A DNA stretch of 5,054 nucleotides, from sequence record OP999031.1, one strand, 5' to 3'. Numbering within the stretch: position 1 is the first letter of the stretch; each line of letters starts with the position of its first letter. A program made the translations under genes and the position numbers. The notes under the pieces were generated by a model that was not told the DNA's origin, made no database searches, and was given only the letters and a program-made list of their open reading frames with translations. Of this stretch, positions 717 to 5,054 are shown one piece after another.

Positions 717-741
717 CTAGTTGGAGCATAAATTTATTGTT

Positions 742-1551
742 ATGATTAAACCCCTTAAGCTAAGGCCAACTTTAGCAATAATAGAGGGTTTTACAAGAAC
801 TGTTCCTCCGCCTGGCCTTTTACGCTACCTAAAAGATGTAGGAAATCCTAAGTACGCGTACTTGATAGATCAAGGCAATGGGTTAGTTGAAATAAAGTTT
901 ACGGATCAGGAATTAAATTACCCGAAGCTGGGCTATTACTTACTTTATAGAAAAGACACTAAAAAGCAAACGTTAGTAATACGTTTTCCACGTGATTATG
1001 ATGGAAGGTATTATAAAGCTTACACTCCTGATTCTATAATCTTATCGAAAAAGACAGTGATAAAGAAACGAAAATACATAAGAAAGTCTGCGTTAGTAAT
1101 TGAGCATTTTGTTGAAGAATTAAAGCCACTTAAGCCAGATTATGATTTGCTTATAATTGCAGACAAGAAGAAAAGCAAAGAAAAGAAGAGATTTATTAAC
1201 AAGACGATGCTAGTTACTGAGTATAATACTGGTGATAGAATATACTACTACATAAAAATACTTGACAAAAACAAAACAATACTAAAGAGAGTAGCGCATG
1301 AATTTTCAAAAGATGGAGTGCTTGAGCTCAACTTAAAAAAGCTTGAACGCTTTTATGGTGTAAAGCTAGGCAAAATTGTTTCTGTGCAGGATTATGGGGA
1401 TGAGATCAGCTTGCTTTACGATACTAGAGAAGAAAGCAAAAAATATGTGCTCAGGGTGAAGTATGATGGTTATTGGGTTGTGACTGTTGATGAGATGATG
1501 AATCTGATAACGCTTGTCCGTTTCCCGACTGTGGCTGACAGTTCGCAGTAG
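742..1551 (+). CDS. Hypothetical basic, beta-rich protein, possibly with several AbrB/SpoVT-like (swapped-hairpin) DNA-binding units
   Basis: Long ORF (721 TTG or 742 ATG to TAG 1551, followed by TAG TAA), rich in Lys and Tyr. The segments GFTRTVPPPGLLRYL...KYAYLIDQGNGLVEIKF, QTLVIRFPRDY...YTPDSIILSKK and KDGVLELNLKKLERFYGVKLGKIVSVQDYGDEISLLY resemble the AbrB pattern by eye. CDS confidence is high; the product call is tentative. Confidence 0.8.
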   Translation: MIKPLKLRPTLAIIEGFTRTVPPPGLLRYLKDVGNPKYAYLIDQGNGLVEIKFTDQELNYPKLGYYLLYRKDTKKQTLVIRFPRDYDGRYYKAYTPDSIILSKKTVIKKRKYIRKSALVIEHFVEELKPLKPDYDLLIIADKKKSKEKKRFINKTMLVTEYNTGDRIYYYIKILDKNKTILKRVAHEFSKDGVLELNLKKLERFYGVKLGKIVSVQDYGDEISLLYDTREESKKYVLRVKYDGYWVVTVDEMMNLITLVRFPTVADSSQ

Positions 1552-2335
1552 TAGTAAGCCTTGCCAGATAACTGAAAAACTCCTGACGTGTTAGAAGGTC
1601 ATTATCATACATATGTAAAAGTAATATGACAGTTGTTGGCCTTGAAACGCCATATTTTTCAAAAAGCGCTTCTTGCTCAAGTAATTCTTTGTATTTTTTA
1701 TATTCTTGCGGTGCCATATATAATGGAAGTTTTTCACCACATTTAGCTGGTATTTTTCTTAGTCTGAGAGCCTTTAGTAGGCTAATTACGTTTTGTTTAA
1801 ATGAAGGATCTGAGAGGAAGCGATAAATTGCTTCTTTTATGTACTCTGCTGGTATACTGCCTGCATTGCGAATCTTGGTGGTTAATTCTTTCTTAAAACC
1901 AAGCGGAACAAAAAATATATGTTTTGTATTATGCATTGCCGAATCTTGAGTATATGGCTCAATATCTTCATCAGTCAGAAGCCCTGCCTCTTTTGCGCTT
2001 AAGAAGAGTGCTGCGAGTAGTAATTTGCTTAATGTTAGTCTTTTTTCTGGCGGAGCATTTTGTAGAGCTTCAACTGCTGCTTTAACTACTTTTTCATAGA
2101 GCGAGAGTGGAAGTAAAACTTTACATTTAGTCATACCTTTTCTAAATGCGTGAATGTTTAGCGCAAAAGTGATTAAGTCTTTCATTACATTAGGATCGCG
2201 GATTGCCTTGTTGAGATAAGAAACTGGAAATTTTTGTAAAGCATAGCTATCCTTTTGAACTAACTTCTCTGCAATATCATCTGGTACAGTATAGTCTACT
2301 TCTTTCACGTAGACTCCAGAGATTACTGGAGACAT
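1451..2335 (-). CDS. Putative transcriptional regulator with four tandem ribbon-helix-helix-like units (2 x 2 duplication)
   Basis: 294-aa ORF. Four strand-Pro-helix-helix units start at KEVDYTVPDDIAEKL, TKCKVLLPLSLYEKV, TKHIFFVPLGFKKEL and EKLPLYMAPQEYKKY. The halves (aa ~10-128 and ~137-256) align by eye. The last ~34 aa are low-complexity and antisense to the opposite gene. Confidence 0.8.
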   Translation of the reverse strand: MSPVISGVYVKEVDYTVPDDIAEKLVQKDSYALQKFPVSYLNKAIRDPNVMKDLITFALNIHAFRKGMTKCKVLLPLSLYEKVVKAAVEALQNAPPEKRLTLSKLLLAALFLSAKEAGLLTDEDIEPYTQDSAMHNTKHIFFVPLGFKKELTTKIRNAGSIPAEYIKEAIYRFLSDPSFKQNVISLLKALRLRKIPAKCGEKLPLYMAPQEYKKYKELLEQEALFEKYGVSRPTTVILLLHMYDNDLLTRQEFFSYLARLTTTANCQPQSGNGQALSDSSSHQQSQPNNHHTSP

Positions 2336-2341
2336 GAAACC

Positions 2342-2698
2342 TTACCCATTCACCAGTTTTTTAGTCTCGCATAATAGTATCTTAATGCTATTAAGGTTAT
2401 CTTTTGCTAATTCTTCTCTTCTCTTTCCTTTAATCAAATCATCTATTTTTGCCTTTTCTGCAACTGCCAATTTTCTAGCAAACTGAAGAAGAATGTATGC
2501 CTTTTCAGCCTCTGGGGTTTCTCTTCTTTTTTCATCGAGCAAAAGCATTGCTCTTGATATATTATTTACGACATTACTAAGGTTTTTTCTGATAGTGAGA
2601 AATTTTTTAGTTTCTGCTGAAGCAGTAAGCAGTTGAATTGAGTTGTCTAGCAGGTTTGTAATTCTTTCGTGAAAAATTTTATTAGTTTGAAGCAACAT
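2342..2698 (-). CDS. Hypothetical all-alpha-helical protein, 118 aa; first gene of a two-gene operon with the RHH-repeat gene
   Basis: GGTGA Shine-Dalgarno (2705-2709, minus strand) 6 nt before the ATG, amphipathic helical pattern, and a 6-nt gap to the next ATG at 2335. Confidence 0.85.
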   Translation of the reverse strand: MLLQTNKIFHERITNLLDNSIQLLTASAETKKFLTIRKNLSNVVNNISRAMLLLDEKRRETPEAEKAYILLQFARKLAVAEKAKIDDLIKGKRREELAKDNLNSIKILLCETKKLVNG

Positions 2699-2732
2699 TT
2701 TTTATCACCATATTAGATATTGACTTTTTTTA

Positions 2733-2746
2733 TATTTAAAGTTTTC
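2733..2746 (-). promoter_or_regulatory. BRE-TATA promoter of the leftward operon
   Basis: The minus strand reads GAAAAC-TTTAAATA, which predicts a transcription start near 2711, just upstream of the GGTGA Shine-Dalgarno. Confidence 0.6.
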
Positions 2747-2800
2747 TCACATCAATAACGTAACAAGAAACGAAAGGAAATGTATGGATAACAATCTTCT

Positions 2801-2890
2801 CCCCCTAAATAGTGGGGTTTGGTAGGCTTTTTCGGTAAATCTACCAAAATCTGTTAAACTGTTCATAATTCTCCAAAACTGGAGAATTAT
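2801..2890. repeat. Cluster of three adjacent inverted repeats in the divergent intergenic region
   Basis: CCCC-CTA-AA-TAG-t-GGGG (2801-2817); perfect 8-bp TTTGGTAG(2818-2825)/CTACCAAA(2841-2848); perfect 11-bp ATAATTCTCCA(2865-2875)/TGGAGAATTAT(2880-2890). Confidence 0.8.
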
Positions 2891-2914
2891 AATGATAAAC
2901 TCGTAAAAGTATGG

Positions 2915-2948
2915 AAAAAGTTTATACAGTTAGCAAAAAGTTTATAAA
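2915..2948 (+). promoter_or_regulatory. Tandem BRE-TATA boxes upstream of ORF 2972
   Basis: AAAAAGTTTATA occurs at 2915-2926 and 2935-2946 (20-bp period). TTTATAAA (2941-2948) lies at -31 to -24 from ATG 2972. Confidence 0.65.
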
Positions 2949-2971
2949 CCGAGTTAAAGAGAAAACGACAT

Positions 2972-3475
2972 ATGGAAGTAACAGCAAACAAGCAAGAAGA
3001 AATAAAGAATAAAAAAGAAGAAATAAAAGAACTGCTGAAACAAGTAGATAACTTTAGCAAGCTTGTGAATAAACTTCAAAACAAAGTAGAAGAACTGCTA
3101 AAGGAAAGAGAAGAGTTGTGGAACGAAATTGCTGAGCTTAACAAAGAGATAAATGAACTAAAGAAAGAGAAGCAAAAGCTAGAGTTGATAGAGAAGGCGC
3201 TAAAACAAAACATTAGTACAATAGGAAGAAGGAAAAAACGTAATGCTGAGCAACTAGACGATTTACCTAGCCAGCTTGATAGAATAATTATAAAGAAAAA
3301 GCAAATTCAAACAAGGTTAAATGAATTGATAAAGAAGCAACGAAACTTAATAGGTAAAAGAAAAGCAGTTGAAGAGGAAATTAAAAAAACCTTGAAAATG
3401 ATGGATGAGGCAAAACAGCAAAGAGAGGAGTCTGAGGCTTTCTTGTCAATTCTTGCAAAAGCTAAAAATTTATAA
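2972..3475 (+). CDS. Coiled-coil protein, 167 aa
   Basis: Near-continuous heptad pattern (e.g. LVNKLQNKVEELLKEREELWNEIAELNKEINELKKE), very rich in Lys and Glu, leaderless promoter upstream. Confidence 0.88.
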   Translation: MEVTANKQEEIKNKKEEIKELLKQVDNFSKLVNKLQNKVEELLKEREELWNEIAELNKEINELKKEKQKLELIEKALKQNISTIGRRKKRNAEQLDDLPSQLDRIIIKKKQIQTRLNELIKKQRNLIGKRKAVEEEIKKTLKMMDEAKQQREESEAFLSILAKAKNL

Positions 3476-4638: not shown

Positions 4639-4659
4639 ATATTACTATTCGATATTACT

Positions 4660-4667
4660 TTTATAAA
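4660..4667. promoter_or_regulatory. Palindromic TATA box TTTATAAA between divergent leaderless genes
   Basis: The only clear TATA in the 54-bp gap between ATG 4638 (minus) and ATG 4693 (plus): -29/-22 from the first and -33/-26 from the second. Confidence 0.55.
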
Positions 4668-4692
4668 TTCTGTAGTCGAAATAAAGAATAAC

Positions 4693-5054
4693 ATGATAAA
4701 AAGAATTGGTGATTTTGTTATTCAAAATGAAGATCCTAGCAAACCGTTATTGACTGTTGACTATGAAAATGCGTTTAGAAAACAATTCAAAATAATACTA
4801 AAAGATGTGATAGAGGAGAAACTAAAGAGAGACAAAAATCCTTACCTCGATATGCCGCTTTGGCTTAATGATGAGAGTGGACAAAAAGTTTTGATTCCTA
4901 CCATTAACCCCTTCATTATGAAAATAACGAGAGATTTTACAAAAGATTTGACAAGCTTTTCAATCTTTGTCATAGAAGGGGAACAAGGTGCTGGAAAAAG
5001 TAGCATGGCATTACAAATCTTGGCAGGGATTTATGGATATTGGCCCGATGATCC
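4693..5054 (+). CDS. P-loop NTPase, 5' part only (runs off the window); possibly a small viral ATPase of the fusellovirus SSV1 B251-like type
   Basis: Not in the ORF track. Manual translation gives MIKRIGDFVIQNEDPSKPLLTVDYENAFRKQFKIILKDVIEEKLKRDKNPYLDMPLWLNDESGQKVLIPTINPFIMKITRDFTKDLTSFSIFVIEGEQGAGKSSMALQILAGIYGYWPDD. A hydrophobic strand is followed by Walker A GEQGAGKS (4978-5001) and a helix. The subfamily call is tentative. Confidence 0.88.
   Translation, partial: MIKRIGDFVIQNEDPSKPLLTVDYENAFRKQFKIILKDVIEEKLKRDKNPYLDMPLWLNDESGQKVLIPTINPFIMKITRDFTKDLTSFSIFVIEGEQGAGKSSMALQILAGIYGYWPDD

Follow-up and report, generated by a model that had tools for sequence, protein, structure and literature searches.

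A predicted four-unit ribbon-helix-helix chain, and putative operon regulator, in STSV-like viruses

STSV4_5_ORF6, a protein of Sulfolobus tengchongensis spindle-shaped virus 4 (STSV4), very probably carries four ribbon-helix-helix (RHH) units in a single chain. Sequence comparison and structure prediction together give this architecture good support, and the chain appears to have arisen by duplication of a module that already held two unlike units. We infer from the position of the gene that this four-unit chain is also a sequence-specific, Aca-like regulator of the early-type operon that it shares with an ORF72-like gene, a reading we hold with moderate confidence.

The gene and its relatives

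The window analysed here is the whole of sequence record OP999031.1 (5,054 bp), a contig of STSV4 with a nucleotide identity of 96% to STSV3 and about 81% to STSV1. STSV3 and STSV4 originate from the Tengchong hot springs, and both genomes are incomplete sets of contigs (PMC10101205). The gene lies between an upstream gene on the same strand and a convergent one:

1451..2335, minus strand: the RHH gene, complete coding sequence, 294 aa and TGA stop; STSV4_5_ORF6 in GenBank, hypothetical protein
2342..2698, minus strand: ORF7, 118 aa, helical; upstream in the same operon; homologue of STSV1 ORF72 and STSV2_73
721..1551, plus strand: ORF5, 276 aa, convergent; homologue of STSV1 ORF74, phrog_28281

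The initial annotation of this DNA took positions 1556-2335 as the open reading frame, implying a protein of 260 aa. The frame is still open at 1556 and continues to the TGA at 1451-1453, and the shorter range spans only the structured part of the protein. Every peptide segment quoted in that annotation is present in the minus-strand translation of 1451-2335.

Homologues of STSV4_5_ORF6 are STSV1 ORF73 (63% identity) and STSV2_74 (68%), both labelled hypothetical, and the protein matches phrog_31106, which has no known function, from end to end. No paper in the literature searched names ORF73 or STSV2_74. The ORF73 family is confined to STSV-like viruses. A word-index protein search returned five clusters only, all STSV-like, and a HMMER search of 1.84 billion sequences returned, P0006 aside, one 50% representative, that of the protein's own cluster. 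Relatives in IMG/VR were found in STSV1 and STSV2 only, and the GTDB representative genomes held none.

P0006, a candidate relative of 1162 aa made of repeats of about 67 aa and lacking a Pfam match, was rejected as spurious: a stretch of 27-34 residues of unit 4 matched it repeatedly. It probably reflects translation of tandemly repeated DNA.

An internal duplication

The two halves of the structured region resemble each other. In BLASTP, residues 1-132 and 133-262 of STSV4_5_ORF6 align at E 3e-4 with 26% identity over 96 residues. The hhalign self-comparison, built on a 7-member family alignment, matches residues 8-128 with 134-256 over 119 columns at E 4.9e-5. Its score of 33.0 compares with a mean of 11.8 for 200 column shuffles (sd 2.2, maximum 19.9), and none of the 200 reached it.

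The likeness is restricted to particular pairs of units. By hhalign, unit 1 resembles unit 3 (E 2.3e-3) and unit 2 resembles unit 4 (E 3.7e-4), while the comparisons of unit 1 with unit 2 and of unit 3 with unit 4 gave no detectable likeness. This combination points to a duplicated pair, (A-B)(A'-B'), and so agrees with the duplicated RHH pair first proposed for this DNA. To judge from the sequences, the pattern matches what would be expected if an already heterogeneous pair had been duplicated.

Predicted fold

AlphaFold2, given five close family members as input, produced a folded model in two of five attempts; the other three failed (pLDDT 36-47). The model of STSV4_5_ORF6 has a mean pLDDT of 74.8 and a pTM of 0.45. 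The initial annotation had named AlphaFold as one way of checking its reading, and in this model, a prediction from a five-sequence alignment, DSSP assigns a strand-helix-helix(-helix), that is beta-alpha-alpha(-alpha), pattern four times. The four proline-ending strands that the annotation had described are likewise found in the translation, at the residue pairs given here with the DSSP elements:

2150..2314, minus strand: RHH unit 1, aa 8-62; strand 8-18 ending at V17-P18, helices 19-28 and 32-46, extra helix 48-59
1952..2134, minus strand: RHH unit 2, aa 68-128; strand 68-76 ending at L75-P76, helices 77-90 and 102-116, extra helix 122-128
1928..1951, minus strand: linker between the modules, aa 129-136; pLDDT <50 at 131-136
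1766..1927, minus strand: RHH unit 3, aa 137-190; strand 137-142 then V143-P144, helices 147-157 and 162-175, extra helix 177-190
1550..1732, minus strand: RHH unit 4, aa 202-262; strand 202-207 then A209-P210, helices 209-221 and 232-244, extra helix 250-262
1454..1549, minus strand: Q/S/H-rich C-terminal tail, aa 263-294; predicted disordered, pLDDT <50 at 265-294

When the N half (residues 1-132) was folded alone, the secondary elements were as in the full model, at a pLDDT of 68. Units 1 and 2 would together make a first TraY-like pseudo-dimer, and units 3 and 4 a second. The linker between them (aa 129-136) is probably flexible, and with its low pLDDT and the pTM of the whole model the relative placement and orientation of the two halves are not predicted.

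In RHH proteins, helix B touches the DNA backbone with its N-terminus and is preceded by a turn carrying a small or hydroxyl residue (G-x-S/T/N). The turn is canonical in unit 3 (A-G-S-I-P-A-E-Y) and unit 4 (Y-G-V-S-R-P-T). It is degenerate in unit 1 (F-P-V-S-Y) and unit 2 (R-L-T-L-S-K), where the serine is retained and the glycine is absent. Unit 3 is the most canonical of the four.

The halves also differ in charge, with a pI of 9.6 for the C half and 6.6 for the N half. By the alternation rule, the exposed face of strand 1 is T16, D/E14 and E/D12 and that of strand 2 is K70, K72 and L74, both conserved in the family. An acidic ribbon of this kind is atypical for an RHH protein that reads DNA, and the N module may therefore act differently, either reading DNA unconventionally or binding a partner. 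The basic, canonical C module is, on its sequence features, the likelier DNA reader.

Structural matches

The model was compared exhaustively with 48,161 PDB representatives. Z values of 5-8 are middling by the tool's own caution, and the full model gave the following top matches:

Model 136-250: 9f0x_E, chain E of the F-plasmid relaxosome; Z 7.7, 102 residues aligned
Model 134-248: 1u9p, permuted single-chain Arc; Z 6.3
Model 136-244: 6oaw_B, 'CRISPR Cas-related protein'; Z 5.7
C half: DndE, 5wtu and 7x4e; Z 5.4 and 5.3
Model 11-124: VirC2, 2rh3; Z 5.2
Model 140-255: AvtR, 4hv0; Z 4.7

We take chain E of 9f0x to be TraY, from the size of the chain and the description in PMC12117103; the chain is unnamed in the match list. 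According to PMC12117103, F TraY is monomeric, a single chain supplying the complete fold of an RHH dimer, and a train of three copies bends the DNA. Similarly, 6oaw_B is probably the RHH-bearing WYL1 of PMC6547453.

As the C half dominated the match list of the full model, the N half was refolded and compared by itself. Here too 9f0x_E headed the list (Z 7.1, rmsd 3.1 A, 95 residues aligned over model 10-119), followed by single-chain Arc, DndE and VirC2, while single RHH domains (TraM, SvtR of SIRV1, omega, CopA and PutA) superpose on unit 2, at residues 66-119. In an RHH2 module two units intertwine through a shared antiparallel sheet of two strands. Such pairing has indirect support here: each half superposes end to end on single-chain RHH2 proteins, with 95-102 residues for 9f0x_E and 81-83 residues at 3.0-3.8 A for single-chain Arc. 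With Z values that are middling, the weight of this modelled comparison lies in the single-chain RHH proteins that top the lists of both halves.

Other searches of structure gave results of varying strength. Foldseek against the PDB returned the relaxosome E chains with probability up to 0.96 and TMt of 0.5-0.6, together with VirC2 rows; these are suggestive only, as there was no match at E<=0.001. Against BFVD, a collection of predicted viral structures, Foldseek recovered the STSV1 orthologue, as well as proteins of 270, 326, 353 and 355 aa at E ~1e-4. STSV1 ORF23 and ORF26 are among the proteins with these lengths, and the others are presumably STSV2 counterparts, a guess from accession prefix and size. 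The BFVD matches also included many 'ribbon-helix-helix' proteins of about 110 aa from rudiviruses and lipothrixviruses, with TMt of 0.6-0.7, and the matches to RHH-annotated viral proteins had a probability of 1.00. The nearest named language-model clusters in the Atlas feature search all belong to the RHH clan (NikA, RHH_3, ParG and Arc, at 0.85-0.89), a weak lead. No informative cluster came out of the shape search of the ESM Atlas, and a sequence-profile search of the PDB returned only a designed protein at E 0.33.

Relation to the clustered multi-RHH proteins

Pfam recognised no RHH family in STSV4_5_ORF6: the whole protein gave none at E<=1, and its halves and units none at E<=10. An RHH_1 scan of the complete genomes of STSV1 and STSV2 gave 13-14 matches each, clustered at about 16-27 kb and often several to a frame; at the ORF73/STSV2_74 locus the same scan gave none.

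The C half aligns with RHH units verified by Pfam. Compared with STSV1 ORF21-24 it matches units c-d over 71 columns (E 4.6e-4), and the alignment keeps the register of the Pfam RHH_1 unit in ORF21 (148-185); unit 3 alone matches at E 1.1e-3. The score of the C half was 30.4, against 13.3±2.4 for shuffles, and 0/150 shuffles reached it. For the N half, the comparison with the RHH units of ORF21-24 was not significant, with 7/150 shuffles reaching the score.

STSV1 ORF20-24 and ORF26 are tandem multi-RHH genes, at 20795-27334 in STSV1 and about 16.0-23.9 kb in STSV2, annotated as hypothetical. ORF20 has two RHH units and ORF23 (270 aa) has four, as do the first 260 residues of ORF21, ORF22, ORF23 and ORF24. 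ORF21 and ORF22 apparently have six, judging from a C-terminal sequence like that of ORF20.

Chains with several RHH domains have precedents. DndE is established as a two-RHH chain (PMC10853773), and among the Bicaudaviridae it is common for one chain to have more than two such domains (PMC9976892, Methods). The background given in the initial annotation, that two-RHH fusions such as AvtR exist, is incomplete, since longer chains are already present in STSV1 and STSV2 as well as in the Bicaudaviridae. The ORF73 family is most likely a very divergent addition, invisible to profiles, to the known multi-RHH chains, and its novelty is modest.

Upstream gene, promoter and operon

The stop codon of ORF7 and the ATG of the RHH gene are separated by 6 nt. 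Two control elements lie upstream of ORF7:

2733..2748, minus strand: ORF7-ORF6 core promoter, a purine-rich BRE-like element GAGAAAAC followed by a TATA box TTTAAATA; conserved in five relatives
2705-2709, minus strand: GGTGA Shine-Dalgarno sequence

The combination of a BRE with TTTAAATA resembles the early promoters of STSV1 ORF1, ORF2, ORF4 and ORF6. Other promoters within the window have TTTATAAA. In L006, a metagenomic relative, the middle of the ORF72-like gene is missing and the promoter and RHH gene are intact.

The ORF7 homologues STSV1 ORF72 and STSV2_73 are listed as the predicted anti-defence gene ADG.87 (PMC11065993 Supplementary Data). That prediction was based on a strong promoter of early type that recurs in the same genome, and the authors argue that, where a virus lacks Aca8, promoters of this kind must be under other regulators (PMC11065993). 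It is from the 6-nt gap to ORF7, the predicted early anti-defence status of the ORF7 homologues and the type of promoter that we infer an Aca-like autoregulator.

A repeat search of 2699-2971, 530-741 and 4639-4692 found no convincing repeated or palindromic operator, and the alignment of ORF72-type promoters showed conserved blocks with no obvious paired sub-sites.

The STSV1 early promoters upstream of ORF1, 2, 4 and 6 (L004:1300-1411, 2650-2757, 5110-5216 and 7410-7520) have in common a block of about 80 nt that goes beyond the BRE and TATA box. Its upstream element has the form GGCTATAATACCGTTAA; downstream come AACAAATAT and then a Shine-Dalgarno sequence. The STSV1 ORF5 and ORF7 promoters carry a variant of this block, which is a candidate long asymmetric operator for a regulator. 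In the window, GenBank ORF8 (2747..2929) and ORF9 (2887..3060), both on the minus strand, overlie the divergent control region and the beginning of ORF10; these two look like annotation by ORF length only.

The C-terminal tail and the ORF5 overlap

STSV4_5_ORF6 and ORF5 overlap tail to tail by 101 nt (window 1451-1551). When the opposite strands were compared, a conserved motif in the Q/S/H-rich tail was found to lie opposite a conserved C-terminal motif of ORF5. The conservation of the tail is best explained, on these sequences, by the overlapping ORF5. The metagenomic relative P0003 lacks the tail, which looks like an overprinted and dispensable extension of ORF6.

On the contig that encodes P0003 (L006, ena:ERZ27272731:k141_781476), a CRISPR-like array at 5829-6300 begins 7 nt past the stop of the RHH gene, in place of the convergent ORF74 homologue found there in STSV1, STSV2 and STSV4. 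In this array the 24-nt repeat CTTTTAGTTCTTTGTTATTTTGAC recurs every 59-61 nt, in at least eight copies, and there was no match to an Rfam CRISPR-DR family. One spacer, at 6034-6069, matches the STSV1 ORF72 stop/ORF73 start (32/34 nt, E 5.5e-8). The same array is present in a second sample (L007:5829-6063), and the rest of the L006 contig is a rearranged patchwork of STSV-like DNA. The array could be either virus-borne and aimed at rival STSVs, or the product of recombination of viral DNA into a host array.

Discussion

The picture that we favour is of one chain with four RHH units, in which units 1 and 2 and units 3 and 4 would each fold on themselves into a pseudo-dimer of the TraY/VirC2 kind. 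A flexible stretch of some 8 residues would connect the two modules, and the disordered tail after them would be dispensable. Such a chain would have originated by duplication of a two-unit (A-B) module, and would be a very divergent relative of the clustered multi-RHH proteins typified by STSV1 ORF20-24. As a regulator, it would be made from the same early-type transcript as the upstream ORF72-like gene, and would feed back on the promoter of its own operon, and perhaps on similar viral early promoters, as Aca represses the acr operon.

A more specific version can be put forward, in which the monomer is an Aca-like early repressor that binds a long asymmetric operator over the BRE/TATA of the ORF72-73 promoter and of the ORF1/2/4/6-type promoters. 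This would have both of the unlike pseudo-dimers read DNA, including the one with the acidic ribbon, and we regard it as doubtful. The initial annotation had likewise proposed that four different recognition strands would let a monomer read a long asymmetric site.

The same fold could also serve other ends. An architectural role at the viral replication origin, with two linked TraY-like modules on adjacent sites bending the DNA and helping a DnaA-like ATPase or another initiator, would fit the best structural match of both halves (9f0x chain E, our inferred TraY), since TraY binds oriT as a DNA-bending train of monomers (PMC12117103). The surroundings offer something to this idea: in STSV1, about 2 kb separate the gene from a region annotated with repeats and stem-loops (561-1120), the DnaA-like ORF69 is also 2 kb away, and the window itself holds a DnaA-like gene at 4693-5052. 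However, RHH pseudo-dimers of similar structure need not share a function, the window has no iterons or repeated sites attributable to the protein, and an operon shared with an early-promoter gene favours regulation, all of which makes the origin role improbable. We give an equally low probability to a chain that has an RHH-like fold and does not read DNA, acting instead by binding proteins or as a decoy; it might, for instance, sequester host RHH partners or other proteins in the service of anti-defence or host takeover. The neutral N half, its strictly conserved first ribbon with E/D12 and D/E14 at the usual DNA-contact positions, and co-transcription with a predicted anti-defence gene would suit a decoy, and such a factor might account for the repression of host division genes by STSV2. 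Yet the C half is basic with a canonical turn before helix B, and characterised RHH proteins, as a general statement, nearly all bind nucleic acid.

It is less likely still that the protein is not RHH at all, and that a real repeat has been given a beta-alpha-alpha appearance by a shallow alignment and a common small helical arrangement. The blank Pfam result, the want of a PDB match by Foldseek at E<=0.001, the two folded models in five, Z values below 8 and an atlas search with nothing clear would all be expected from such an artefact. Against this, several separate lines of evidence agree. The top matches of both halves are single-chain RHH proteins rather than random helical bundles, the C half falls in register with RHH units verified by Pfam, and the BFVD matches to RHH-annotated viral proteins are of the highest probability.

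This reading provides a fold and a testable role for a family that all four STSV viruses possess and whose members have been labelled hypothetical only. Large spindle-shaped archaeal viruses would gain, beside their other multi-RHH chains, a family missed by sequence profiles, and the protein offers a clean example of RHH growth by fusion and then duplication, from monomer to pseudo-dimer to tandem pseudo-dimers. Should the protein prove to regulate early or anti-defence promoters of STSV viruses, it would close the gap that Bhoobalan-Chitty et al. (PMC11065993) left for viruses lacking Aca8, and would be a compact, monomeric and asymmetric DNA reader from a hyperthermophile.

Comparison with known systems

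The nearest comparison within these viruses is with STSV1 ORF20-24 and ORF26. These proteins are matched by Pfam RHH_1, RHH_3 and CopG_antitoxin, whereas STSV4_5_ORF6 is matched by none of them. Their genes form a tandem cluster at 20.8-27.3 kb, while the ORF73-type gene stands alone beside an ORF72-like gene. A long helix separates their halves; STSV4_5_ORF6 has instead a short linker, and an extra helix after each unit.

In its position the gene resembles those of Aca repressors such as Aca8 of rudiviruses, with a DNA-binding-fold gene under a strong early BRE/TATA promoter. The ORF73-type gene shares its transcript with a predicted anti-defence gene, which is an Aca-like arrangement. Aca8 is a small wHTH protein, unlike STSV4_5_ORF6, and the analogy is one of position only.

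AvtR of the lipothrixvirus AFV6 (4hv0) and SIFV gp29 are tandem-RHH regulators of crenarchaeal viruses, with two RHH motifs and a monomer fold (PMC9976892). They have half as many units as STSV4_5_ORF6 and no detectable sequence similarity to it. DndE also has two divergent RHH units in one chain, with asymmetric targets possible (PMC10853773), and matches the C half at Z 5.3-5.4 and the N half at 3.6-4.1. DndE partners the DndD/ABC ATPase in DNA phosphorothioation, whereas no such partner lies beside STSV4_5_ORF6.

The closest likeness in shape is to F-plasmid TraY (inferred for 9f0x_E) and Ti-plasmid VirC2 (2rh3), where two unlike RHH units in each chain make one RHH2 module. The alignment with 9f0x_E, the best structural match of both halves, covers 95-102 of its 113 residues, at identities to TraY and VirC2 of 6-13% and between proteins of conjugative plasmids and of an archaeal virus. 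A chain of TraY or VirC2 holds a single module, and several such monomers are arrayed on DNA, whereas in STSV4_5_ORF6 two such modules are covalently linked.
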